This document shows positions 2,879-64,000 of a DNA stretch of 64,000 nucleotides, piece after piece. Made by a program: the position numbers and the translations under genes. Positions within the stretch are counted from its first letter, which is position 1, and each line of letters starts with the position of its first letter. The notes below the pieces were generated by a model. The model worked only from the letters and a program-made list of their open reading frames with translations, was not told the DNA's origin and searched no databases. The stretch is taken from positions 62,001 through 126,000 of the IMG/VR virus record IMGVR_UViG_3300023179_005186. One strand, given 5' to 3'.

Positions 2879-4111
2879 TTATGATAAATTAATCTTTAAA
2901 ATATCATCTTTATGATTAAAAAAAATTATTTTAAGCTCTTCTAAAATTTTATTTTTATTATCAATATTTTCTCTATCTTCTTCATCATATAATTTGTTTA
3001 AATATGAATTTGCATATTTAATCCATTTTTCTTTGTTTTTAAATTTAGAACTCGTTTTAATAAACTGAATAGTTTTTTCTATTTTATCTTTCTCAAATGG
3101 CTCAGTCAAAATACCCTGAACTTTTTCAAATATACCATTAATTTTATCATTTGTTTTTCCAACCATCCATTTTTTTCCATTAAAATATTTACATTTATTT
3201 CTTGACATATCTACTACACAAAAATTTTTATTTTCAGGTTTCGAATCATTTAAATATAAATGTTTTGTCATATTTGGAATTATATCTTTGCATTTTATCG
3301 TTGCTAAATAATTTAATATTATCTGAATATCTATTTTATCAAACTGTTCTGCTCCATGTGCTAAAATTATATTATTATTTGTTGTACTATTTAATGTATT
3401 ATGTTGTGTATTATTTATTGTTGTATGTTTTAATTTACCTAATTCATTTTTTAATTCAGCACAATTATTTTTTAACTCTTTACAATCATTCTTTAAATCA
3501 TTATTTAAATTTATTAATTGCTTATTTTGTTTATATAATGCTGTTAAAATTAATTTTGTTTGCTCATCTATTTCTATATCCTTTATTAATTCATTTAAAT
3601 ATGCATCATCTTCTTGATGTCTTGAAACTATATTCATTGACCTTGAACATTCTTTTATATCTGTACTTATTATTTTTTCAAATTCTTCTTTATCCTCCTC
3701 TTTTATATCATCTAATATTTTACAATATTTCGATTTATGACGTTTTAATGTATCTGATCTGGAAAATATTTGTAAACAAATATCACACTGATGTACTTTT
3801 TTTACTCTTGATGTTGATTTTCTAATAGGCTGCTCATGTGTGGAGCAGTGTGGAGGTTGTGCGGAGCTTGTGTGGAGCAGTGTGGAGCAGTGTGGAGGTT
3901 GTGCGGAGCTTGTGTGGAGCAGTGTGGAAGTTGTGTGGAGGTTGTGCGGAGCTTGTGTGGAGCAATATTGATCTGGATTTGAGCTGTCAGAATCAGGATT
4001 TACATTGACATTAATTGCTTTACATGAATACTTATTATTATTTATATGTCTTTTAAAATTATATAGTCTATTAAATCCTTTCCCACAATTTGGACATAAA
4101 TGATTTGACAT
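2879..4111 (-). CDS. Two-finger C2HC/C2H2-type zinc-finger protein with coiled coil and conserved NCLDV C-terminal domain (MIGE-like ORF)
   Basis: Fingers CPNC..FNRLYNFKRH..C (aa 6-30) and CDIC..FSRSDTLKRH..C (aa 109-130), a coiled coil, and C-terminal HGAEQFDKI...HLYLNDSKPENKNFCVVD...KYFNGKKW. The architecture resembles recalled MIGE ORFs of Imitervirales. Confidence 0.75.
   Translation of the reverse strand: MSNHLCPNCGKGFNRLYNFKRHINNNKYSCKAINVNVNPDSDSSNPDQYCSTQAPHNLHTTSTLLHTSSAQPPHCSTLLHTSSAQPPHCSTHEQPIRKSTSRVKKVHQCDICLQIFSRSDTLKRHKSKYCKILDDIKEEDKEEFEKIISTDIKECSRSMNIVSRHQEDDAYLNELIKDIEIDEQTKLILTALYKQNKQLINLNNDLKNDCKELKNNCAELKNELGKLKHTTINNTQHNTLNSTTNNNIILAHGAEQFDKIDIQIILNYLATIKCKDIIPNMTKHLYLNDSKPENKNFCVVDMSRNKCKYFNGKKWMVGKTNDKINGIFEKVQGILTEPFEKDKIEKTIQFIKTSSKFKNKEKWIKYANSYLNKLYDEEDRENIDNKNKILEELKIIFFNHKDDILKINLS
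3838..3963 (+). repeat. GC-rich 10/11-bp minisatellite (GTGTGGAGCA / GTGCGGAGCTT / GTGTGGAGGTT) inside the zinc-finger gene
   Basis: GGA(G) cores at 3842, 3852, 3863, 3874, 3884, 3894, 3905, 3916, 3926, 3937, 3948 and 3959. Confidence 0.97.
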
Positions 4112-4168
4112 AAAGTATTTATATATAATAATTATATTTAAATTTTAAATATATTTTATATCAAATCC

Positions 4169-4573
4169 ATTGCTCCAACTTGGAGCAATAGTAAAAAATT
4201 ATTTAATTGGTTCGCCGATATTTATTTTATACTTGTTTTTTCTTAGTTTATATTACAAAATGTCTAACACAACACAACTTGCTCCAATTTGGAGCAAATT
4301 ACTCAAACATACACATTGTTAACTATTATACTTTTTAAATGTTAATAATATTATTTTAAATTAAAAAAATATATATGTAACTAACTTGCTCCAAGTTGGA
4401 GCAAAACTCCACACTGCTCCAACTTGGAGCAGCATCCACACAGAGTTTGTGCGGAGGTTTGCTCCAAGTTGGAGCAAAACTAATTCGTTAGCTTATTAAC
4501 ATTTATTTTTATCATTTTTTGCGTTTTTTATCAAAAAATATATAAGTATACTACTTGCTCCAAGTTGGAGCAA
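4169..4573. repeat. Cluster of six 19-bp palindromes TGCTCCAA-N-TTGGAGCA
   Basis: Copies at 4169-4189, 4279-4297, 4386-4404, 4414-4432, 4458-4478 and 4555-4573. Confidence 0.97.
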
Positions 4574-4688
4574 ATTACACAACCATACACATAGCCAACC
4601 GATATACTTTTTATCAATCTTTGTTAGAATTTATGTATAACTGCAAACTAATTTACACAAATCTCCACACAAAATTTCTTAAAAATTT

Positions 4689-4799
4689 GTGTGTGTGTAG
4701 GAGGGGTAAAAAAAAATAAAATATATTTTTTTTATAAATTTTTTTTTTATTTTTAATTTTAAAATTTTTTTATTTTTTATACTTTTATTTTTAAAATTA
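4689..4799. other. (GT)5-AGGAGGGG motif followed by a 93-bp almost pure A/T tract
   Basis: 4707-4799 contains a single C (4782) and no G. Confidence 0.85.
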
Positions 4800-4895
4800 C
4801 GAGATGATAAAAACAAAATAAAAATAAAAAATATGGTCTGATTAAGATTGCATTAATATAAAAAAATAATATATTTACATCTGATAAAAAAATTC

Positions 4896-5126
4896 AAGAG
4901 CATAAATGGTCTTAAAGATAAATAAAATATAATTTTAATGATCTGTATCATCTAAAAACAAGATTATAAAGAGCATAAATGGTCTTAAAGATAAATAAAA
5001 TATAATTTTAATGATCTGTATCATCTAAAAACAAGATTATAAAGAGCATAAATGGTCTTAAAGATAAATAAAATATAATTTTAATGATCTGTATCATCTA
5101 AAAACAAGATTATAAAGAGCATAAAT
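4896..5126 (+). repeat. Three perfect 73-bp direct repeats plus a partial fourth (non-coding)
   Basis: GAGCATAAAT recurs at 4898, 4971, 5044 and 5117, and the intervening sequence is identical. Confidence 0.97.
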
Positions 5127-5197
5127 AGTTTTGAAAATATAAAAATATCAAGCTTATGATCTATAAAATAATTTATAGAGTATATAATTTAAAAATA

Positions 5198-13613: not shown

Positions 13614-14510
13614 ATGTCAAATTTAACTGAAACTAAAAATATGAATAATACATCTCCACCAAATGTTTTATTTTATAGTATGAAGTGTCAAACATGTAAA
13701 TTTTTTATGACACAAGCTCAGAATGTTGGTTATTTAAAATTTTTTAAATTAATATGTGTAGATGGTCAAGAAAAAACATTTCAAACTAAAGGTTTAAAAA
13801 TGATTCCTACAATCATAGTACAAAATAATTCTAATCCAATTGAGGGGAAAGGGTGTTTATTATGGTTAGAAAATATGTTAAAAAATCAAAAATTAAAAAA
13901 TATAGATAATCCAAATGATCAATATCTTCCAGAAACAGGAATTAATCAACAAAATAATAAAGAAAAAACAGGTAATTCTAATCAATTTTCTGTATCAAAT
14001 ACAAATGTTTTAAGAAGAGGTGCACAAAATATACAAACACCGCCTATACAAATTACTCCTATACAAATTACTCCTATACAAATTACTCCAAAAATTATAA
14101 AAGGGAAACAAGTTCCAAATATATCTTCAAATAAATCAATAAATAAAGGTGAAACTCAACTAAATTCTATTCAACAATCAAATACAAATTTAGTTCAATT
14201 AAATAATACAAATTCAGGTCCAAATGTAAAACCTCGTAGTCAATTATTTGGTTTTTTAGAAAATGAAATGTCTGGTTGTTCAGATAATTATGCTTATTTA
14301 TTGGTAGATAATGCATTACCTAAATCATTTTTACCTCCAGATAAAGATTTACAAATTTATACAGCTCCTGAAGGAAATAAATTAGATAAAAAAACACAAG
14401 AAATGTATTTAAAAAATATGGAAATGTTTAGAGATAATGATAAAGATGAATATAAAAAAACAATAGAAAAACAACATAATGATGTATTACAAAATAATTT
14501 AAGAAAGTAA
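13614..14510 (+). CDS. Hypothetical protein with N-terminal thioredoxin-like CxxC domain
   Basis: LFYSMKCQTC...LICVD...MIPTIIV followed by a low-complexity Q/N region. Confidence 0.7.
   Translation: MSNLTETKNMNNTSPPNVLFYSMKCQTCKFFMTQAQNVGYLKFFKLICVDGQEKTFQTKGLKMIPTIIVQNNSNPIEGKGCLLWLENMLKNQKLKNIDNPNDQYLPETGINQQNNKEKTGNSNQFSVSNTNVLRRGAQNIQTPPIQITPIQITPIQITPKIIKGKQVPNISSNKSINKGETQLNSIQQSNTNLVQLNNTNSGPNVKPRSQLFGFLENEMSGCSDNYAYLLVDNALPKSFLPPDKDLQIYTAPEGNKLDKKTQEMYLKNMEMFRDNDKDEYKKTIEKQHNDVLQNNLRK
14043..14089 (+). repeat. 15-bp in-frame tandem repeat encoding (PIQIT)x3
   Basis: CCTATACAAATTACT repeated three times. Confidence 0.9.
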
Positions 14511-18006: not shown

Positions 18007-18030
18007 TCATTATAAAAAAGTGATAAAATC

Positions 18031-18109
18031 ATATTACAACTAAAATTATATTACAACTAAAATTATATTACAACTAAAATTATATTACAACTAAAATTAT
18101 ATTACAACT
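18031..18109. repeat. 17-bp tandem repeat (4 full + 1 partial) duplicating the 3' end and stop of ORF 18097-19155
   Basis: ATATTACAACTAAAATT at 18031, 18048, 18065 and 18082, partial at 18099. Confidence 0.95.
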
Positions 18110-22881: not shown

Positions 22882-23577
22882 TTAATTAATTTTGCAAAAA
22901 TTTTTACAATCATTCAAGTTTGGAATTCCAGAGTTTGGTTCAGAATTAGGATTAAATAAACAAATTTCTTTAATATTCGTTTTGGTTTTATTCCAATTAG
23001 ACATATTTTTATAATCAGAACTTGAATCTACTGAACATACCATACATTCTGGATATTTTTTCATAAAATTAGGATCTAAATTTAAATTAGATTCTTTATA
23101 ACAAATTTTATTTTTATCAATATTAAAGTCAGATGATAAATTAACAATTTCTCCAGGTTTATATATATTTTTAAAATTAGAAGCTATTTGAGCTAATTTA
23201 TTAAATTCATTTTGATCATTAATAACAATATATTTTGATAAATCAATTTCAGGATATAAATCATTTAGTTGTAAATTTAAAGAATTATTTGTTATAGAAT
23301 CAGGATTAATTTTAATAAAATTATTTGAAATATAAGCAGCTTGATCATATTCTTTAATTCTATTTAATATTTTTTCTTTAGTTATTTCATATTCATTTTT
23401 AGTCTGTTCAAGTTCTTGAATAATTTCATTATTAATATTTAATACATCAAAAGCTTCGTTATAATTTTTATTAACATAAATAAATTTATAGATTAAATAT
23501 ATTATAGTAATAAAGACAACTGTATATAAGATTTTATATGATTTTTTATTTATAGTATTTTTAGAATTAATATCCAT
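22882..23577 (-). CDS. Hypothetical membrane-anchored protein with Cys-rich C-terminus
   Basis: TM helix near the N-terminus; six Cys in the last ~75 aa. Confidence 0.7.
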   Translation of the reverse strand: MDINSKNTINKKSYKILYTVVFITIIYLIYKFIYVNKNYNEAFDVLNINNEIIQELEQTKNEYEITKEKILNRIKEYDQAAYISNNFIKINPDSITNNSLNLQLNDLYPEIDLSKYIVINDQNEFNKLAQIASNFKNIYKPGEIVNLSSDFNIDKNKICYKESNLNLDPNFMKKYPECMVCSVDSSSDYKNMSNWNKTKTNIKEICLFNPNSEPNSGIPNLNDCKNFCKIN

Positions 23578-23651: not shown

Positions 23652-24698
23652 ATGAGTTATTCAACCCAAGGAGCATCAAATAGACAGATTTATGATTGTT
23701 GCGATTATGCACAAACATTAAAACAATCTGTAGATCCCCTACAATACAATTTATATTTTGGATCAGGTGAAAATTGTTCCAAATGTATCGATAAAAAAGC
23801 ATGGTTTAGACAAGATAGACAAATAGTTGATATTGAATCAGAATTAAGAAATCAAACTAGACCTTTATCAAGATGTGATTTTTTAAAATATAATCCTAAT
23901 TGTAAGACTTCAGATAGTTGTATCAGTACTTTTGATCCAAATATTCCAAGAATTCTTTCACCAAGTTTATGTCCAATTGTTTATAATAATATTCCAGTTC
24001 AAACAAGTCCTGGTTATACTGTACCAAGTCCTAATATCTGTGGAAACAAAGATGATTGGAGACGTGCTGATGATATTAATACATATAAAGCCTATCAAGA
24101 AAGTAATAAAACTATATTAGCTAATTCAGATAGACCAGAAGATGTATTTATGTTTTTGAATACTTGTAATTCACAACCTTTATACAATGGTTCAATGGAA
24201 AGAGTTAGACCTTATTTAGCAGGTGATATGATTTCAAGACCATACAAAGCTGATAATCAAGTTTATATGCCTGGTGAAGCAAGTAAAGGTCCAGTATCAT
24301 ATGGAGGAGTAGCAGGAGCTCCAGGAATTCCAAATCCATCACCAATGGATGTAAATATGGGTAGAAATGTTCCAGTTACTGCAGAAATGAACATGGGTAT
24401 TGGTCCAATGGATAATGCCTTAAGTAAAATGGCTCAAAATGGTAATATATCAAAAACATTAAATAATATGATTGATAATAGCATGCTTACAAGAAATGCA
24501 AATATTTCAGATCCTAACGTTGGTGCCCCAGTAATGGTTGGAAATAATGTAAGAAGAATGGAAAGTGAAATGAATATGAGAAATCAAGGAGTAAGAGGTA
24601 TGATATTTGGATCGGAAGCAAAAAATATGATGAGTGTTTCATCAGAATCAGAGAGTGAATCAATGTATGATTCTGAGGAAGAATATCAAACATTATAA
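23652..24698 (+). CDS. Conserved NCLDV protein (R.xYD...QS..PL...CxxC...VDIES family), possibly virion structural
   Basis: ASNRQIYDCC..LKQSVDPL..CSKC..VDIESELRNQTRPLSRC. Confidence 0.7.
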   Translation: MSYSTQGASNRQIYDCCDYAQTLKQSVDPLQYNLYFGSGENCSKCIDKKAWFRQDRQIVDIESELRNQTRPLSRCDFLKYNPNCKTSDSCISTFDPNIPRILSPSLCPIVYNNIPVQTSPGYTVPSPNICGNKDDWRRADDINTYKAYQESNKTILANSDRPEDVFMFLNTCNSQPLYNGSMERVRPYLAGDMISRPYKADNQVYMPGEASKGPVSYGGVAGAPGIPNPSPMDVNMGRNVPVTAEMNMGIGPMDNALSKMAQNGNISKTLNNMIDNSMLTRNANISDPNVGAPVMVGNNVRRMESEMNMRNQGVRGMIFGSEAKNMMSVSSESESESMYDSEEEYQTL

Positions 24699-25696: not shown

Positions 25697-28558
25697 ATGG
25701 ATATAGCAATAGGAAGTGGTTTAGGTATATTCGGTAACTTAATAAATAATAATTCAAATTATAAAGAAAAAACTATTAATCCTCAATTTAATTATGAACA
25801 ATCTTATCCAATAAATTATTTAAATAATTATGAAAGTGATATTTGGAACACGAGAGATAAAATATTATATAATACAATAAGTGATTTATATAAAAAATCA
25901 GAAGATGATAGTAAAATAGTAAGTAATATTTGGAGAATACAGAATGATAGTATAAGTCAAATTAAAAATAAAGAAATTAATAATTTATTAAATAATGATA
26001 TAAATATGATAAAAAATATAGGAAGTAATAATATAGAAAGTATGAAAAATATAAATGATATTAATTCTGATTCAGATAGTATATTTTCAGATAATTTTTC
26101 TTTGCCAGAGTATATACCTGAAAATAAAAATTTAAGAAAAGTTAATATAAATGATAATATATCAGAATATTCTGATAGTGTAGATTCAAGACCAAATATT
26201 AATACAAGAGTTTTAAATACTCAAGATAAATTTTTAGAAGATATTGTCTCAAATTTATCAGGAAAATCAAATGGATTATCAGAATCAAAATCATATGCTT
26301 CAGATAATTGTACTACATTTGAAAATCAATTTAAACCATTAGAATTTAATCATAGCGGTATTCCGGGTACTTTACCGAGTACTAAACAAATATTAAATAT
26401 TTTTAATGATAAATTACGTTTTAATCCACAATCAAATTTTAATCCAGAATCAGATGGTAGATATGGAGTAACGTCTGATATGACTCATGATAACATGCAA
26501 CCATATTTTAAATCAAAAACTTATGGTTTTAATCCTGAATTTGATAAAGAACAAACAAATTATGCTGTTAGAAAAGTAGAATTATTTACAGGATCTGATC
26601 AAAACCCACAATTTAAACACAAAACAGATGTACCTTATTTATTTCCTCCAGAAATTGGTAAAATTGAATCTGTTACAGGAGTGCCTAATTTTTCTGATTT
26701 TTTTGAATCTAGAGTAATACCATCCGATAAAAGACAAGGAGAAAGACCATTTCAACCAGTTAGAGTAACACCAGGTTTAAATTTAGGTTATAATGAAATA
26801 GGTAATACTGGATATCAAGATTTATATAGAGCTTTACCAAAAAATGTAGATCAATTAAGAACAGTTGATAATCCAAAAGTTTCATATCAACCACCAGTAA
26901 TTGTAGGTCAAAAGGGTGATCGAAGAGGTGCAATTGGTAATTTTATTCAAAAGGGTCCAGATAGATTTTATGAACAATTACCAAATTCATTTATGCCACA
27001 AATAGGTGATTTTATAGCTCCTGCTATTTATGGTAAACATTTAAAAACAGTAACTAATCGAACATTAAATCCAGATAATCCTCATTTAAATCCAGTTAAA
27101 TCAGATGTTGATTTTGCAACACCAGAATATCTTTGGGGTCAATATAGAAAAACATTTAAAAAAACATTTGATTATGATGGTCCAAGAAACGTTCAAGAAA
27201 ATACTCGTGGTCAAATTATTAATCAAGAAACATACGTTCCAACAAGTACCCAAAGAGAATCTATGCCTGAATTAGATTTATCAAACATTAAAGGCAATTA
27301 TATTTCAGTACCATTAAATAACTATATGAATTTTGTTCCTGAAACAACTCTGCGTGAAATAATGTTAGAAGATAATGGACGAAAAAATTTAACAAACGTT
27401 TCAAATTCAATTAAAAGTTATTTATTTAATGCTGTAAATTCGGTTCCTGATGAAACTTTAAGATCAATTTTAACTGAAAAAATTATTTTAACAAATGTTA
27501 AAGAAAATTCTGAACGTGGATATTTATTTAATAATAATAATGCTATTCAAGATACAAATATGAGAAATTTATCAGAAGATAATTTAATTTTAGGTGTTTT
27601 ATCTAATAAAGAACAAGGATATTTATTTAATAATATAAATGCTATTCCTGATACTAATCTAAGAAATCTAGTAAATACTATGTATGAAAGAGGTGGTTTT
27701 GGATTTCAAGGTAATCACCAAGAACAATATATGTATAATTATAATAATGCAACTCCTCAAAGTAATTTAAGAAATTTCACTGAAGATCAACAAAATATTG
27801 TTGGAACAAAAGGTAATCATTTAGAAAATTATATATTTAACTATGCAAATGGTATAAGTGATGCAAATTTAAGAAATATAATTGAAGATCAAAAATATAT
27901 TATAGGTGCTAAGGGAAATCATCAAGAACAATATGCATTTAACTATGATAATGCAATTCCTAATACTAATTTAAAAGATTTAACTGCTGATCAAAAAAAT
28001 ATTATTGGATCTAAAGGTAACAGTATAAAGCAATATAATTTTAATTATGAAAATGGTACTCCAAATACAAGTTTAAGAGAATTAACTGCTGATCAAAAAA
28101 ATATTATAGGCACAATTGGAAATAAATTTGAACAATATAATTTTAACTATGATAATGCTACACCTGATGCAACAATGAGAGTTTTTTCAGGTCCACAAAA
28201 GAATCTAATAGGTTCTAAAGGTAACGGTACTGGCACAGTTAATTTTAATTATAAAAATGGTACTCCTGATGCAACAATGAGAGTATTTTCAGGTCCACAA
28301 AAGAATATTATAGGTACACAAGGTGATGGAACACAATCAAGATCAAGATTAGATGCAGATAATGCTTATTTAAATGTATCAAAAGAAATAGTTGCTGAAG
28401 GTAGAGATCCAGTTCCAGTAAAAGAAAATCGTGGTCCAACAACACAATTTACAGAATATGTTTTTTGTGATGATTCATATTATCCAAAACAAATTTTTAG
28501 TAGTGTAAGACCTTTATCAGCAGTACAAAATGAATTATATACTTTTTCTCAAGAATAA
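25697..28558 (+). CDS. Conserved NCLDV protein with C-terminal 34-aa repeats
   Basis: VELFTG, GERPFQPVRVTPGLNLGY and LPKNVDQLR..NPK core; about nine Y.FNY.N..P...LR....QK..IG.KGN repeats. Confidence 0.8.
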   Translation: MDIAIGSGLGIFGNLINNNSNYKEKTINPQFNYEQSYPINYLNNYESDIWNTRDKILYNTISDLYKKSEDDSKIVSNIWRIQNDSISQIKNKEINNLLNNDINMIKNIGSNNIESMKNINDINSDSDSIFSDNFSLPEYIPENKNLRKVNINDNISEYSDSVDSRPNINTRVLNTQDKFLEDIVSNLSGKSNGLSESKSYASDNCTTFENQFKPLEFNHSGIPGTLPSTKQILNIFNDKLRFNPQSNFNPESDGRYGVTSDMTHDNMQPYFKSKTYGFNPEFDKEQTNYAVRKVELFTGSDQNPQFKHKTDVPYLFPPEIGKIESVTGVPNFSDFFESRVIPSDKRQGERPFQPVRVTPGLNLGYNEIGNTGYQDLYRALPKNVDQLRTVDNPKVSYQPPVIVGQKGDRRGAIGNFIQKGPDRFYEQLPNSFMPQIGDFIAPAIYGKHLKTVTNRTLNPDNPHLNPVKSDVDFATPEYLWGQYRKTFKKTFDYDGPRNVQENTRGQIINQETYVPTSTQRESMPELDLSNIKGNYISVPLNNYMNFVPETTLREIMLEDNGRKNLTNVSNSIKSYLFNAVNSVPDETLRSILTEKIILTNVKENSERGYLFNNNNAIQDTNMRNLSEDNLILGVLSNKEQGYLFNNINAIPDTNLRNLVNTMYERGGFGFQGNHQEQYMYNYNNATPQSNLRNFTEDQQNIVGTKGNHLENYIFNYANGISDANLRNIIEDQKYIIGAKGNHQEQYAFNYDNAIPNTNLKDLTADQKNIIGSKGNSIKQYNFNYENGTPNTSLRELTADQKNIIGTIGNKFEQYNFNYDNATPDATMRVFSGPQKNLIGSKGNGTGTVNFNYKNGTPDATMRVFSGPQKNIIGTQGDGTQSRSRLDADNAYLNVSKEIVAEGRDPVPVKENRGPTTQFTEYVFCDDSYYPKQIFSSVRPLSAVQNELYTFSQE

Positions 28559-52664: not shown

Positions 52665-52780
52665 TAATATGTATAGGATAAGGCTCCAATTCCTAATATG
52701 TATAGGATAAGGCTCCAATTCCTAATATGTATAGGATAAGGCTCCAATTCCTAATATGTATAGGATAATGCTCCAATTCC
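52665..52780. repeat. 29-bp tandem repeat x4 duplicating the capsid gene 3' end
   Basis: TAATATGTATAGGATAAGGCTCCAATTCC at 52665, 52694 and 52723; the coding copy at 52752 differs by one base. Confidence 0.96.
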
Positions 52781-54748
52781 TCCAATTAATCTCAATACAT
52801 TAAAATTAGTAACCTGTACAACTAACTTATAATTAATATCATTATTATTAATTAACTTATTTTCCTGAAAATTATTAATTATACTATAATTAAATTTGTT
52901 TGTATTCGCTGTTTCACTTAAGAATATATCACTAACTTTAACTTTTAATATAAAACTAGGAATTCTACTTAAATTAATACTTCCTGAAGGTTGTGTTTCT
53001 GTTGGATTAAGTGCAAATGAATAACAATATAAACCTTTTTGTGGACTAGAATTATAACATTTAAATGGCATAAGATAATTAAAGAAATTTGAATTATCAC
53101 CAATTAATACTGTACTATTTAAATATAAATATGATTCTTCGATTATATTATAACTATCAATTAAATTTGTATATTTATTAAAAAGATTATCATTTATATA
53201 TGCATAATAATTTTTTGTAAGTAAATTTGTATTAATAAGTTCTTTTCCTATAATAAATTGTGTTGGATTAAAGTTTTTTTCATTATCAAATAATATTTTT
53301 AAATATTCAATAAAATAATTTTCTTCATTAGTTGTTGAATCAGTGTTATTTAATATAGAATATGTAAAACCTTGATTATTAGTAAATATATCACGAATAT
53401 TATTATTTTTAACAACAGACCAATACATATCTTTACAACAGTGAAAAAAATCAAGATCAAAAGAATTATTATATCTATTAAGATTATCAAATTCTATTTG
53501 TTGAACCTGAGTAATTAAATATTCATGACCTGATTGAGCAAATTTTTTCCTTTCAATACTATCTAAATAAATATATTCTGCCAGCATAGTAATCTCTAAT
53601 TTATTTTTCATTATTTCATTATTATTTTCAATTAAATAATTTAGAATATCATTTTCTACTTTCTCATTATTATAGTCTTTATCGATATTAATTTTAATAC
53701 ATTCATGAAATTTTTTTAAATTAATTTTTACTTGAATTGTATTAAATTGTAAAGCAATTAAAGGAAATGATAATCCATAATTTCCATTAAACCATAATGG
53801 TATGGGTAGATATAAATAATTATTATCCTTTGTTAAACTAAATAAATTAATTTCTTGATTTGCACCAATTAAATCATTATATAATTCAGGATTTTTATAA
53901 AAAAGATCTCCATAATTATTAATATAATAATCACTAAGAGAATTTATTTTATTACTACCTATATAAAAGTCAATTGAATTAAATAAATAGATCCCTATTT
54001 TATCAACCCAACTAAAATTTATTATATCATTAGTTACAATAATATCTTTTAATCTATTATACAAATCTTTATTTAGTTGTTCAATTATATCTAAATTTTT
54101 ATAAATAGCAAATTTAAATAATTCATAACTCATTTGTTCTTCAGTCCAATTCTCGTATATATAAACTAAAGTATTATTAATATCCTTAAATAATGAGGCA
54201 TTTGTAAACAAAGTTATATTTATATTACTTATATTAGTTAAAAGACCATTATTATAAAAATAATTAATTACTGTAAAGTATTGTTGATACTGATCCGAAT
54301 TAATATTACTTAAAATAAATAATGATAAATCATTGATATAAGTAAGACTTGTTATATTATCATATTTTTCAAAAAATAAGTTGATTACATTTAGTAAGTT
54401 ATTATAAAATTGTATAAAATAATCATAATATAAAATATATGTAAAATTATCTAATATATTTGGTAAAATATTTTTACTTATTATATCTTTATTTAAATTT
54501 GAAAAATCTATTTTAGGAAGCTTTATTCTTAATGTTAATCTTGATAATAAATCACCAGAATTTTTTGGTATTGTTAACACTGCTGTTTCTCCAAATTCTA
54601 CATTATTATCAAATGATAATTGATTTACTCTTTTACCAAAATTTGTATATCTTCTATATATTATATTAAAAAATGTTATTTCTGGGTTTGCAGTTAACAT
54701 TATATCTTGATTACCATATGAAATTACTTGAACCAGACCACCAGCCAT
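52751..54748 (-). CDS. Major capsid protein paralog (double jelly-roll)
   Basis: MAGGLVQVISYG..PEITFF..YRRYTNF, SGDLLSR, SFALNP..QPSGSINLSRI and NFNVLRLIGGIG. Confidence 0.93.
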   Translation of the reverse strand: MAGGLVQVISYGNQDIMLTANPEITFFNIIYRRYTNFGKRVNQLSFDNNVEFGETAVLTIPKNSGDLLSRLTLRIKLPKIDFSNLNKDIISKNILPNILDNFTYILYYDYFIQFYNNLLNVINLFFEKYDNITSLTYINDLSLFILSNINSDQYQQYFTVINYFYNNGLLTNISNINITLFTNASLFKDINNTLVYIYENWTEEQMSYELFKFAIYKNLDIIEQLNKDLYNRLKDIIVTNDIINFSWVDKIGIYLFNSIDFYIGSNKINSLSDYYINNYGDLFYKNPELYNDLIGANQEINLFSLTKDNNYLYLPIPLWFNGNYGLSFPLIALQFNTIQVKINLKKFHECIKINIDKDYNNEKVENDILNYLIENNNEIMKNKLEITMLAEYIYLDSIERKKFAQSGHEYLITQVQQIEFDNLNRYNNSFDLDFFHCCKDMYWSVVKNNNIRDIFTNNQGFTYSILNNTDSTTNEENYFIEYLKILFDNEKNFNPTQFIIGKELINTNLLTKNYYAYINDNLFNKYTNLIDSYNIIEESYLYLNSTVLIGDNSNFFNYLMPFKCYNSSPQKGLYCYSFALNPTETQPSGSINLSRIPSFILKVKVSDIFLSETANTNKFNYSIINNFQENKLINNNDINYKLVVQVTNFNVLRLIGGIGALSYTY

Positions 54749-61982: not shown

Positions 61983-64000
61983 ATGAGCTCAAATAATTTA
62001 AATAAATTAGAAGAAATAGATATTTTAAAATATAATTTACTAAAGAAAGAATATAAAATATTAAGTTTAATATTAGCTAATTTACAAATAATAATAATAG
62101 AAAATGAAAATATTTTGCTTTATTCAAAAAATCAATCAATGAAATCACTAAATGAATTAATTAAGAAACTAAATGATTTATATAATAAATCATTTTTAGA
62201 TATATATAATAAAGATAATGAAAATTTATTAAATAATGAATCAATGTATTCAGAAATAGGTGATATAAAATCAGAGGAAAATAAAACTAATAAATCAGTA
62301 GAATCAGTAGAATCATTAGATTCTAATAATTTAGATAAATTACAAAAAGATAATGTTATTTTATCATCTGAAATATTACAAACTGTTAATATATTGGATA
62401 CTAAAAATAAATCAAGTCAAGATAATTTAATAAAAAAAAGATTAAATAATAAAGAAGATTTAGAATGTAATTTAAATTTAGAAATTTTAAATGATATTAA
62501 AAATATTTATTATCAAGAAGATAAATTTAATAATTATGGAAAGTATTCATATTTAGTAAATTTGATTAAATATAATCCATTTGAAGAAATTAAAAATCAA
62601 ATAATACTTTTATCAAAAATAGTTGGTTTTACTTCAATAAAAGATATAATATATTTATCTTTAAATAAAAATGACTTTGTATTTGAAAAAAAAGATAAAT
62701 CATTATATGAATTATTATCATCAATATTTATACCATTAGATTTTGATATATTAGATTATACAGAAAAAATAAATATTAATATTTCAAAACTAGAGTCAAC
62801 AAATACTATATTATTTAATAGTCAATGTTTAATAAATTTTACAATCAATAATAAATTGTTAAAAATTAAAGGATTTATAAAAAATGATCCACTTAATATT
62901 TTTTTGAGAACTTCACAAATTTCAAATAATTTTTTATATTTAAAAAAGTGTAATTTTGAAAAAATAATAAATGAAATTGATAAAGAACCATGTGATTTAA
63001 TTATAACAAGAGATACTTATAATAAATTACAAAAGATTAATAAAGAATTTGCTATAGTATATCTCAAAAATATGACAATTTGTGAAATATTAATATTAGA
63101 TTCAACACAATTTGTTTTAAAATTATATGAAGATTATAATAAATTTAATGAATTAACAAAAATACAATTTGTTAAATTAATTAAAAATTTTACAAAAGAC
63201 TCGAATGAAAATTTATCTAATATGTATAATACTATTAGATTATTATTATTAGGTACTGAAGAAAATTGTTCAGTTGCTAGTTTGTTATTTAATTTATTAA
63301 AAGATAAAAAAAGTACAAATTCAAATGAATATATTGCAAATATAATATATAATCAACTAAGTCATATATGTCAATTAAAACTTAAAAAATCAACATTTAA
63401 TATTAAAAATGAACTTGAAAAACTAAAAAGTATAACAACATCAGATATTGATTTAAAAAAACAGGTATTATTATCAAAAAATATGCCTGATCATATAAAA
63501 AAAATATGTTTAGAAAAATTAGAAGAATTAAAAAATGCAAATAATGAAACATATAAAATAAAAATGTATGTAAATATTTTAGTACAATTTCCATGGCCAT
63601 CAGATTTAGATGATAATATTTTTAGGATTGTTGGATCTGATAAAAAGAAATCAAAAGAATTTTTAGAAAATGTTGAAAATAAATTAAATTTACAAATTTT
63701 TGGTCATAAACTTGCTAAAAATAAAACTTTACAAATATTAGCTAAATTAATATCAGTACAAGGATCTCATATATCACCAATAGCATTGTCAGGACCTCCT
63801 GGTGTTGGTAAAACAAAATTTGCTCAGGTATTAGCTGATTGTCTTGATATACCTTTTGTACAAATCACATTAGGTGGTCAAAATGATGGTGAACTTTTAC
63901 ATGGTCATGGATATACATATTCAGGAGCACAACCTGGTTTAATTGTTAAAAAAATGGTTGATGCGGGATCTGCTCGTTGTATTATGTATTTTGATGAATT
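61983..64000 (+). CDS. lon: Lon protease homolog, 3'-truncated by window edge (absent from ORF track)
   Basis: ATG 61983 is in frame with FPWP, QIFGHKLAK, LSGPPGVGKT, ITLGGQNDGELLHGHGYTYSGAQPG and CIMYFDE. The intervening frame was only spot-checked for stops. Confidence 0.92.
   Translation, partial: MSSNNLNKLEEIDILKYNLLKKEYKILSLILANLQIIIIENENILLYSKNQSMKSLNELIKKLNDLYNKSFLDIYNKDNENLLNNESMYSEIGDIKSEENKTNKSVESVESLDSNNLDKLQKDNVILSSEILQTVNILDTKNKSSQDNLIKKRLNNKEDLECNLNLEILNDIKNIYYQEDKFNNYGKYSYLVNLIKYNPFEEIKNQIILLSKIVGFTSIKDIIYLSLNKNDFVFEKKDKSLYELLSSIFIPLDFDILDYTEKININISKLESTNTILFNSQCLINFTINNKLLKIKGFIKNDPLNIFLRTSQISNNFLYLKKCNFEKIINEIDKEPCDLIITRDTYNKLQKINKEFAIVYLKNMTICEILILDSTQFVLKLYEDYNKFNELTKIQFVKLIKNFTKDSNENLSNMYNTIRLLLLGTEENCSVASLLFNLLKDKKSTNSNEYIANIIYNQLSHICQLKLKKSTFNIKNELEKLKSITTSDIDLKKQVLLSKNMPDHIKKICLEKLEELKNANNETYKIKMYVNILVQFPWPSDLDDNIFRIVGSDKKKSKEFLENVENKLNLQIFGHKLAKNKTLQILAKLISVQGSHISPIALSGPPGVGKTKFAQVLADCLDIPFVQITLGGQNDGELLHGHGYTYSGAQPGLIVKKMVDAGSARCIMYFDE

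Follow-up and report, generated by a model that had tools for sequence, protein, structure and literature searches.

A coding minisatellite in a giant-virus zinc-finger gene that resembles the gene's own upstream control region

The zinc-finger gene and its repeat-containing linker

The window analyzed here is a stretch of 64,000 nucleotides (positions 62,001 to 126,000 of the IMG/VR record IMGVR_UViG_3300023179_005186; denoted G000, 315,722 bp, GC content 0.202). At 2879-4111, on the minus strand, it contains a gene for a 410-aa protein that consists of C2H2 finger 1, a disordered repeat linker, C2H2 finger 2, a coiled coil, an Asn-rich spacer and a conserved C-terminal domain. The two fingers fit the pattern C-X2-C-X12-H-X3-5-H/C and are recognized by a Pfam search (zf-C2H2, PF00096, E 2.9e-8); they are modeled with pLDDT of about 90, and a Foldseek search identifies similarity to the fingers of Tramtrack, GAGA, Zif268 and BCL11A. 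Finger 1 (4034-4096, minus strand; CPNCGKGFNRLYNFKRHINNN; pLDDT 86-93) has the recognition helix RLYNFKR, whereas finger 2 (3722-3787, minus strand; CDICLQIFSRSDTLKRHKSKYC) has a Zif268-like helix, RSDTLKR, and is preceded by a basic stretch, IRKSTSRVKKVHQ. The linker between the fingers (3788-4033, minus strand; aa 27-108) is predicted to be disordered (pLDDT about 32-36). A long helix or coiled coil, a likely oligomerization element, is predicted at 3425-3565 (minus strand; aa 183-229; pLDDT about 90).

The C-terminal domain (2882-3352, minus strand; aa 254-410) is confidently modeled on its own, although the model of the full-length protein was too poor to be of use. Its similarity to known folds is weak: the model aligns with residues 391-574 of C962R from ASFV, in which the D5_N domain spans aa 387-568, at Z 5.0-6.1 over 132-138 residues, and with BEN domains at Z 4-5.1, and values of Z below 8 can reflect a common arrangement. 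No Pfam family, including D5_N (PF08706), matches this domain in any of the 55 members of the family at E <= 1. All 55 homologs are of the Nucleocytoviricota type.

Within the linker, at 3838-3963 on the minus strand, lies a minisatellite of 12 head-to-tail units of 10 or 11 bp that encodes aa ~50-91 (CSTQAPHNLHTTS TLLHTSSAQPPHCS TLLHTSSAQPPHCS). On the coding strand the units are CTCCACAC+TG, CTCCACAC+AAG, CTCCGCAC+AAC and TTCCACAC+TG. The GTGYGGAGS cores start at 3838, 3848, 3859, 3870, 3880, 3890, 3901, 3912, 3922, 3933, 3944 and 3955, so that the spacings are exactly those given in the initial annotation (10, 11, 11, 10, 10, 11, 11, 10, 11, 11, 11). With up to one mismatch, GTGTGGAGC matches 14 times in the window against 0.63 expected, a number reached in 0 of 100 shuffles. 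The observation made in the initial annotation, a GC-rich coding repeat with a period of 10.6 bp, is therefore real. However, the units additionally form an in-frame super-unit of 42 bp (10+11+11+10; 14 aa), organized as about 3 x 42 bp, which had been overlooked: TRF reports period 11 (78% match, score 142) but assigns a higher score to period 42 (3.0 copies, 96% match, score 231). The spectral peak is at 10.60 bp. The vector strength of the 12 cores is 0.946 at 10.5 bp and 0.973 at 10.6 bp, but random mixtures of 10- and 11-bp steps already average 0.915, so that the claimed location of all cores on one helix face follows from the unit sizes.

The GC content of the array is 0.55-0.58, with strong purine/pyrimidine strand asymmetry (GC skew +0.64), and it is one of only four 100-bp stretches with GC of at least 0.5 in the record; a second one (window 4376-4487) is the palindrome cluster upstream of the same gene. 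The cycling of the peptide through frames is confirmed as well: in coding orientation, the CTCCACAC cores fall in codon phases 2,1,0,2,0,2,1,2,0,2,1,2, which gives LHT, ST and PH readings, and all six frames are open across the array. Identical array sequence appears in contigs of four independent public sequencing runs, although all short-read assemblies break inside it.

Homologs at 40-50% identity do not conserve the peptide. A search of viral contigs for related loci confirmed none, but a metagenome scan and exact-protein look-ups yielded homologous loci, and comparison of homologs at 37-51% identity shows that the linker is hypervariable in length and sequence. Most homologs have a repeat in the same linker. 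The five long arrays peak at 10.50-10.70 bp with different or unrelated units, CTCCACAC, CTCCTCACAA, CCCTCACAA, CTCCACCR and CCCTCCAGGA; two lineages have triplet-compatible 9-bp arrays, and about six have none. On the tree, sister lineages carry unrelated units (TTACCCCAAGA versus CTCCTCACAA) at the same period of about 10.5 bp. Close strains differ mainly in the array: strains 95-99% identical show an exact 42-bp deletion in otherwise identical DNA or rearranged 10/11-mers, and other clusters differ by +14, +10 and +3 aa, although some of this polymorphism could be repeat collapse by short-read assemblers.

The upstream region

Immediately before the gene, at 4112-4140 (minus strand), there is an AT-only ATTATTATATATA-type box, 10-25 nt before the ATG, that is conserved in position in all homologous loci and, judging from conservation only, looks like a promoter. 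It is followed in the 5' direction by a cluster (4170-4573) of six copies of the 19-nt palindrome TTGCTCCAA-S-TTGGAGCAA, at 4170, 4279, 4386, 4414, 4459 and 4555, which is conserved in a 95%-identical strain while its flanks diverge. The half-site of the palindrome, TGCTCCA, is the junction of the coding units (..CACACTGCTCCACAC..). Between the palindromes, at 4404-4459, there are non-coding copies of the coding unit, namely CTCCACAC (4407), ATCCACAC (4434) and GTGCGGAG (4449). Another copy, AATCTCCACACAA, at 4660-4672 on the plus strand, is inverted relative to the array and, in gene orientation, lies directly 3' of a conserved (CA)n element (4681-4706, minus strand; CCCCTCCTACACACACACAAATTTTT in gene orientation). 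The (CA)n element is present upstream of every homolog with enough flank and also upstream of a second zinc-finger family, with a different C-terminal domain, in other giant-virus contigs. A long A/T-only tract (4707-4800), with A-runs followed by T-runs, lies 5' of the (CA)n element and is conserved in kind in homologous loci; as an unwinding tract of an iteron-type origin, however, an A/T-rich tract is a weak criterion in a genome that is 80% A+T. More distally, at 4896-5148, a 73-bp tandem repeat in 3.5 copies (96-100% identity) carries AAGACCATTTATGCTCT and AGATGATA motifs that recur in the distal upstream regions of homologs, and its copy number differs in a near-identical strain. The upstream arrays of homologs have periods of 10-11 or 21-22 bp; these arrays and the coding array, with its peak at 10.6 bp, correspond to the directly repeated, helically phased sites of an iteron-type origin as sequence anatomy only.

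The units CTCCACAC and CTCCGCAC, the palindrome and the (CA)n element occur only at this locus in the 315-kb record, which argues against a dispersed or mobile element; elsewhere in IMG/VR, the palindrome gave only 7 single chance hits in unrelated, GC-richer contigs. ARAGORN detects no tRNA at the nearby GC island, and an Rfam search produced only sub-threshold miRNA-like hits caused by the palindromes. No GC-skew, AT-skew or gene-strand turning point is detectable at this locus (about 66 kb in G000), although this proxy for a replication origin may be uninformative for this virus. Among contigs from public RNA libraries, those of library X3 cover both the gene and the upstream region, which may be DNA carry-over, whereas those of library X19, from a related strain, cover only the 5' part of the gene (window 3695-4086).

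Motif sharing between the linker and the upstream region

The new finding is that the linker unit of each lineage recurs in the upstream region of the same gene. In 12 loci, the 50 nt after the (CA)n element share GC-containing 7/8-mers with their own linker but not with the linkers of other loci (0 of 20,000 permutations). In 15 loci, the whole upstream region shares 8-10-mers with its own linker (0 of 50,000 permutations, p~2e-5), whereas the controls are not significant (upstream versus gene body, p 0.09-0.4; gene body versus linker, p 0.6-0.9). This set includes the 9-bp array of the homologous locus L029, whose unit GATTTGCAG appears three times as its reverse complement right after the (CA)n element, and two out-of-sample loci that were added afterwards. 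A paralog in the same genome, at 244588-245694 of G000, provides a within-genome replicate with a private motif: it has a linker array of 10 bp x 7.7 plus TTTGCAGAA units, and both occur in its own upstream array. The shared motifs occur in either orientation, which fits DNA binding better than RNA pairing.

Similarity of the upstream iterated motifs correlates with the finger-1 recognition helix (Mantel r 0.28, p~0.005; 16 loci) but not with the finger-2 helix (p 0.45) or with the identity of the C-terminal domain (p 0.47); for example, KKHHLxx occurs with ATTAGTAAA in three lineages from different clades. Similarity of the linker units does not correlate significantly with the finger-2 helix (p 0.14), and all G-strand motifs contain GAG/GTG triplets, so that a finger-code reading of finger 2 against the linker unit does not discriminate among them.

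Predicted function, known analogs and alternative explanations

The initial annotation proposed that the frame cycling points to selection on the DNA rather than on the protein, as with iterons or phased protein-binding arrays, and this interpretation is partly supported. The outcomes that it had named as contrary were mostly not observed: homologs do not conserve the peptide, and the five long arrays keep the 10.5-10.7-bp period. The motif sharing and the phasing of upstream sites add evidence at the DNA level. However, a 10+11 = 21-bp step is the smallest frame-preserving change, so that frame selection alone can hold the mean at 10.5 bp; the lineages with 9-bp arrays or none indicate that the array and its helical period are dispensable; and the GC-richness is at least partly a survivorship effect, because only T-poor, TA/TG-free units stay stop-free in three frames in a 20% GC genome.

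These observations appear best compatible, with moderate confidence, with the hypothesis that the array is a slippage-prone minisatellite whose unit is a cis-acting DNA motif rather than a peptide module. In this view, the gene encodes a modular DNA-binding protein with two widely spaced fingers, and its 5' flank is a conserved control module that contains, in gene orientation, distal conserved motifs, the A/T tract, the (CA)n element, one or two copies of a lineage-specific motif and then a phased array (10-11 or 21-22 bp) of lineage-specific units or palindromes that ends about 40 bp before the TATA-like box. Given that the linker DNA is made of the same motif at 10-11-bp spacing, sites on one helix face would bracket the promoter and the finger-1 coding segment. 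Both sets of sites are inferred to be bound by one sequence-specific protein, most economically the oligomerizing product of the gene itself; such binding would give cooperative or looped occupancy that autoregulates the gene, or would nucleate an iteron-like nucleoprotein complex. The protein would only need a disordered, stop-free linker, which would explain why the peptide cycles through frames, why the unit is C/A-rich on the coding strand and why copy number and unit sequence turn over quickly under a frame-preserving filter. The anatomy of the locus, its conservation, the covariation and the polymorphism are demonstrated by the present analysis, whereas binding, the identity of the bound protein and any regulatory or iteron function are inferred from sequence. 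The evidence that the sites are bound by the product of the adjacent gene is only indirect, namely the covariation of the finger-1 helix with the upstream motif.

Cis-regulatory and replication elements of giant viruses are almost unknown beyond short promoter motifs and terminator hairpins, and literature searches found no description of this module. The locus offers a testable protein/site pair, with lineage-specific and even paralog-specific motifs that co-vary between the upstream module and the coding linker. If binding were confirmed, the family would provide a natural set of finger-helix/site pairs and a model for autoregulation or initiation in Nucleocytoviricota, as well as a clear case of a coding segment whose sequence is dictated by DNA function while the peptide only has to stay open and disordered. 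For annotation, the locus is a warning that GC-rich, frame-cycling "low-complexity linkers" in AT-rich viral genomes can be cis elements.

The closest precedent is the origin of lambdoid phages, which lies in the middle of the initiator gene O: repeated binding sites are embedded in the coding sequence of the inter-domain linker of the protein that binds them, site copy number changes linker length (6 versus 4 iterons gives 13 extra aa), the sites are bent or phased, and an AT-rich tract lies next to them (PMC7466680). In the present case, binding is only inferred, the units are 10-11 bp rather than 19-bp dyads, matching sites also lie upstream of the promoter, the protein uses C2H2 fingers, the virus is a giant virus of eukaryotes, no replication signal is seen, and some genomes have several such genes. 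Plasmid iteron/rep cassettes with autoregulation (P1, F, pSC101 and R6K type) similarly have iterated, helically phased sites at about 21-22 bp next to the gene of their binding protein, inverted repeats near its promoter and site sequences private to each replicon, as they are to each paralog here, but the array described here is partly coding and has a shorter unit, and there is no evidence of a replication function. Classical GC-rich minisatellites of the Jeffreys type share the unit size, the strand asymmetry and the variable copy number; this one differs in that it lies inside an ORF with a non-triplet unit, is read in three frames and is tied to a matching non-coding motif upstream. Phase-variable coding repeats, such as CTCTT in Neisseria opa leader peptides, are also non-triplet and readable in all frames, but here the unit is 10-11 bp, the organism is a virus of eukaryotes and no out-of-frame alleles were seen among those recovered. 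The contested MIMIVIRE repeats in mimivirus ORF R349 are short repeats inside a giant-virus ORF that have been proposed to act at the nucleic-acid level, but they are in-frame 15-nt units that match virophage DNA, whereas the units described here match the gene's own upstream region and recur family-wide with changing sequence. Finally, baculovirus hr elements are arrays of imperfect palindromes that act as binding platforms (enhancer or origin) for the viral regulator IE-1; they are dispersed, multi-copy and non-coding, whereas the palindromes described here are private to one gene and a related motif extends into its coding sequence.

A less likely but possible alternative is a neutral coding minisatellite, in which replication slippage and unequal exchange expand a stop-free C/A-rich unit inside a disordered linker that tolerates any P/S/T/H/Q/L peptide, and ectopic gene conversion or template switching between sites only 150-600 bp apart keeps the upstream and linker motifs alike without any cis function. 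This possibility is compatible with the in-frame variation among near-identical strains, the disorder of the linker, the absence of the array in about six homologs, the lack of TA/TG in the units, which keeps all frames open, the 21-bp step and the vector strength of random 10/11 mixtures. It does not explain, however, why unrelated units in sister lineages again settle at about 10.5 bp, why the non-coding upstream arrays are also phased at 10-11 or 21-22 bp, why the motif partner sits at a fixed place next to a conserved (CA)n element in either orientation, or why the upstream motifs track the finger-1 helix and not phylogeny. Furthermore, conversion between inverted copies at this distance would also invert the promoter segment.

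It appears unlikely that the locus is an origin or another genome-maintenance site, with the zinc-finger protein as its specificity factor and the D5_N-like C-terminal domain coupling it to the viral D5-type primase-helicase, as lambda O recruits P-DnaB. The uniqueness of the cis elements, the A/T-only tract next to iterated phased sites, the embedding of the sites in the linker of the putative binding protein, exactly as in lambdoid phages, and the alignment of the C-terminal model with D5_N of C962R and with D5_N regions of SF3 helicase/primase models are compatible with this reading. Against it are the lack of a skew or strand switch, the two or more paralogs, each with its own module, in several genomes, the (CA)n module upstream of the second zinc-finger family, which looks more like a promoter architecture for regulator genes, and the weakness of the fold match, given that BEN domains score equally and Pfam finds no D5_N. 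In an extended and similarly doubtful version, each member of the family would form a self-specifying protein/site pair, its private motif being written both upstream and, as a helically phased array, in its own linker, and at least one such locus would act as a replication origin or partition-like site that recruits the primase-helicase; if so, this would be the first defined origin and origin-binding protein in Imitervirales and an independent re-invention of the lambda layout.

The remaining possibilities seem very unlikely. An RNA-level device, in which a long 5' leader or a small RNA starting near the (CA)n element pairs with the repeated unit in the mRNA to control translation or stability, could exploit the many tandem targets and is suggested by the reverse-complement orientation of the post-(CA)n motif in the window locus, L009, L011, L029, L033 and, weakly, L021. 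However, the shared motif is in direct orientation in the homologous loci L014, L025, L066 and L067 and in the paralog, the position of the TATA-like box suggests a short leader, the X19 contigs cover only part of the gene, and there is no Rfam match. A contingency switch, through frameshifts after finger 1 caused by gain or loss of a single unit or through inversion of the promoter/finger-1 segment by recombination between the inverted upstream and coding copies, is suggested by the non-triplet unit with cores in all three codon phases, the three open sense frames, the inverted copies that flank the promoter and the unstable copy number. However, all full-length alleles recovered (410, 408, 400 and 396 aa, and the other clusters) are in frame, although the protein database is biased towards intact ORFs, and no joints or inversions were seen in the contigs, to which this comparison was limited. 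A functional His/Cys/Pro/Ser/Thr-rich peptide repeat (TLLHTSSAQPPHCS), for example a metal-binding or modified spacer with incidental DNA periodicity, would fit the in-frame, 96% conserved super-unit and the recurring His and Cys, but homologs share neither the peptide nor its composition (no Cys; DLQ, VQP, PPETLQD, SSQIPHN...), the linker is predicted to be fully disordered, and within 90%-identity clusters the peptide changes frame and order.

The coding array between the two zinc fingers

The repeat at positions 3838-3963 of the window consists of twelve GTGYGGAGS cores at spacings of 10, 11, 11, 10, 10, 11, 11, 10, 11, 11 and 11 bp, exactly as described in the initial annotation, and this observation accordingly stands. 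With up to one mismatch allowed, the core matches 14 times in the window against 0.63 expected. However, a TRF search shows that the best description of the array is 3.0 copies of a 42-bp unit (96% match, score 231), itself made of four 10/11-bp sub-units; this in-frame 14-aa super-unit had been missed. The spectral peak is at 10.60 bp. The vector strength of the cores is 0.946 at 10.5 bp, but random mixtures of 10- and 11-bp steps average 0.915, so that the phasing on one helix face follows from the unit sizes.

The GC content of the array is 55-58% in a giant-virus record of 315,722 bp with 20.2% GC. The array is one of four stretches in that record with GC of at least 50%. Another is the palindrome cluster located 400 bp away, upstream of the same gene, and the other two, outside the window (positions 23014-23146 and 24124-24289 of the record, denoted G000), are coding tandem repeats with triplet-compatible periods (6, 9, 15, 18, 30 and 45 bp; CTGCTG/CTGCAG type), in contrast to the non-triplet unit studied here. 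Among 161 tandem arrays inside long ORFs of the record, the present one is the only GC-rich array whose base unit is not a multiple of three.

The array lies within the ORF at 2879-4111 on the minus strand (410 aa), in which a Pfam search identifies two C2H2 fingers, and encodes aa ~50-91, within the 82-aa linker between them. On the coding strand, the unit is CTCCACAC followed by TG or AAG/AAC. The cores occupy all three codon phases, giving LHT, ST and PH readings, and every frame is open. AlphaFold models the fingers and a long coiled coil with confidence, whereas the linker is predicted to be disordered (pLDDT about 33). A separate model of the C-terminal 171 residues is confident (pLDDT 85.7), and its best structural matches are other giant-virus C2H2 proteins. 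Weaker matches are to the D5_N domain of ASFV C962R (Z 5.0-6.1 over 132-138 residues, chain 391-574; the domain spans aa 387-568, PMC10516667) and to BEN domains (Z 4-5.1), but Pfam detects nothing in this region, and these similarities are not taken here to identify the domain. The family is large and confined to Nucleocytoviricota. The gene is convergent with an asparagine synthase gene (GATase plus Asn_synthase) at 1036-2826 on the plus strand, and the same neighbor occurs in the loci L016, L017 and L067.

Variation of the array among homologs and close relatives

Whether homologs keep the peptide or the DNA periodicity had been proposed beforehand as a test of the DNA-level reading. An alignment of 27 homologs (37-51% identity) shows conserved fingers, coiled coil and C-terminal domain, but a linker that is hypervariable in length and sequence. 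In the DNA of homologs, five long arrays have spectral periods of 10.50, 10.55, 10.60, 10.65 and 10.70 bp, with the units CTCCTCACAA, CCCTCCAGGA, CTCCACAC, CTCCACCR and CCCTCACAA, and the homologous locus L066 contains TTACCCCAAGA/TTTACCAATT at 10.5 bp. Three short arrays are at ~10 bp, two lineages possess 9-bp, triplet-compatible arrays (encoding VQP and DLQ peptides), and about six have no array. The GC content of the linker is raised in all array-bearing homologs. On a tree built without the linker, the ~10.5-bp arrays belong to three subclades, interleaved with 9-bp arrays and with loci that lack an array, and sister lineages carry unrelated units. Thus, the peptide is not conserved and the DNA periodicity mostly is, but the periodicity is neither universal nor obligatory, so that the suggestion of the initial annotation that selection acts on the DNA rather than on the protein is only partly supported.

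Within the 90%-identity cluster, one strain differs from the window only by an exact 42-bp deletion in the array, and two strains at 95-99% identity carry re-ordered 10/11-mers of the same kind. Other clusters differ by +14, +10 and +3 aa in the linker. Given that every short-read assembly breaks inside the array, some of these length differences could reflect assembly collapse. All the alleles are in frame.

The upstream module and the motifs it shares with the linker

The gene has an unusually long 5' intergenic region (1,087 bp here and 565-715 bp in homologs), although the neighboring genes differ between loci. In gene orientation, this region contains distal conserved motifs; a long A/T tract; a conserved CCTACACACACACAA(A)TTTTT element, denoted (CA)n; immediately after it, one to three copies of the lineage's own linker unit; and an array of lineage-specific units or palindromes at 10-11 or 21-22 bp that ends about 40 bp before an ATTATTATATATA box next to the ATG. 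In the window, the distal motifs are represented by a 73-bp x 3.5 tandem repeat at 4896-5148 (96-100% identity) that carries AAGACCATTTATGCTCT and AGATGATA. Similar motifs (AGACCAT..ATGCTCT, TATCATCT) recur in the distal upstream regions of homologs and of a paralog, and the copy number differs by two units in a near-identical strain (locus L016).

The palindrome in the window is TTGCTCCAA-S-TTGGAGCAA, a perfect 19-nt palindrome present in six copies at 4170-4573 that form the second GC island of the record (4376-4487). The copy nearest to the ATG is unchanged in a 95%-identical strain while its flanks diverge. The half-site TGCTCCA is the junction of the coding units, and copies of the coding unit lie between the palindromes and next to the (CA)n element. 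All these elements occur only here in the 315-kb record. The upstream region additionally includes a 112-nt direct repeat (4226-4337 and 4502-4613, 72% identity), each copy ending in a palindrome, which probably explains why the (CA)n element of this lineage lies at -586 instead of about -300. In four homologous loci (L011, L021, L029 and L033), 100-140 nt before the ATG, the proximal arrays consist of A-tract units phased at 10-11 bp, namely ATTAGTAAAA x 8-14, AATGGAGAAAA x 8 and ATGCCGAAAA(A) x 8-9, the classical recipe for intrinsically bent DNA just upstream of a promoter.

The (CA)n element occurs at 4681-4706 in the window and in the loci L009, L011, L013, L014, L021, L025, L028-L033 and L066, as well as L038-L058. 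Preceded by an A/T tract, it is found 180-590 nt upstream of the ATG of every family member with enough flank. In several loci, it is followed by TTGTG, which forms an inverted repeat with the CA run. The element also lies 197-484 nt upstream of genes of a second giant-virus zinc-finger family (MECEFC...HQKTNKKC), where it is again followed by lineage-specific iterated palindromes. The module is therefore a general upstream architecture for such regulator-like genes. In contrast, L067, as well as L020, which shows the same upstream layout, has only ~130 bp upstream and no (CA)n element, with an ORF upstream instead; in L020, that ORF tentatively resembles a GIY-YIG/T5orf172-type protein, judging from inspection of its sequence alone.

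In 12 non-redundant loci, the 50 nt after the (CA)n element share GC-containing 7/8-mers (on either strand) with their own linker, with a diagonal sum of 41 against an off-diagonal mean of 0.33 that is not reached in any of 20,000 permutations. With 15 loci and the whole upstream region, shared 8-, 9- and 10-mers sum to 86, 67 and 48 against off-diagonal means of 0.75, 0.44 and 0.21 (0 of 50,000 permutations). Comparisons of the upstream region with the gene body, and of the gene body with the linker, show no enrichment. The pattern includes the 9-bp array of L029, whose unit occurs three times as its reverse complement right after the (CA)n element, and also held in two loci retrieved afterwards as a test. 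The shared motif is inverted in some lineages and direct in others.

A paralog of 368 aa in the same genome (G000 244588-245694, minus strand, outside the window) repeats this design with a private motif set. Its linker contains a 10-bp x 7.7 coding array (TTAACCAAAA/TGCACCAAAA) together with TTTGCAGAA units; the same units are iterated about nine times upstream; a (CT)n element, CTCTCTCTCTCAAATTG, replaces (CA)n; and the distal repeat is 83 bp x 3.8 (G000 246060-246371).

Possible binding protein, interpretation and other repeats

Across 16 loci, similarity of the upstream iterated motifs correlates with similarity of the finger-1 recognition helix (Mantel r 0.28, p~0.005), but not with the finger-2 helix or with the identity of the C-terminal domain. 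For example, KKHHLxx is associated with ATTAGTAAA in three lineages from different clades, K[SI]SHLKA with ACCCAAA, and YKHHLxR with TTACC..GGTAA. Finger 2 is Zif268-like (R-x-D-x-L-x-R), and all G-strand linker units contain GAG/GTG, which is compatible with the finger code but does not discriminate among them.

The simplest hypothesis that covers all these observations is that the linker DNA is a set of phased binding sites of the same kind as those upstream, probably for the gene's own oligomerising product, whereas the peptide is a passenger that must only stay open and disordered. In this view, slippage generates variation, and selection filters it for reading frame. The arrangement of the repeats, their variation among homologs and the sharing of motifs with the upstream region are directly observed, whereas binding, the identity of the bound protein and any effect on transcription or replication are inferred from sequence. 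The same logic applies to the lambdoid origin in the middle of gene O, where extra iterons lengthen the O protein by 13 aa (PMC7466680). Autoregulation is nevertheless favored here over an origin function because there is no skew switch at the locus, paralogs each carry their own module, and a second family shares the (CA)n architecture.

A purely neutral minisatellite remains a serious alternative, given that frame selection (10+11 = 21 bp) and stop avoidance explain part of the 10.5-bp mean and of the GC island, and that gene conversion could explain part of the motif sharing. Phase variation is no more than a conjecture. RNA pairing is disfavored by the mixed orientations of the shared motif, and a selected peptide is contradicted by the homologs.

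An intergenic 29-bp x 4.0 tandem repeat elsewhere in the window (52665-52781, 98% identity, TAATATGTATAGGATAAGGCTCCAATTCC) has a unit that contains GCTCCAA, the half-site of the palindrome, and could be a further site array or a coincidence. Other tandem repeats in the window are a 17 bp x 5.1 array at 18024-18109 (98%), a 15 bp x 3.1 array at 14043-14089 (100%), and, at 27708-28324, a 102-bp unit repeated about six times at 71-87% identity, which is probably a coding domain repeat.
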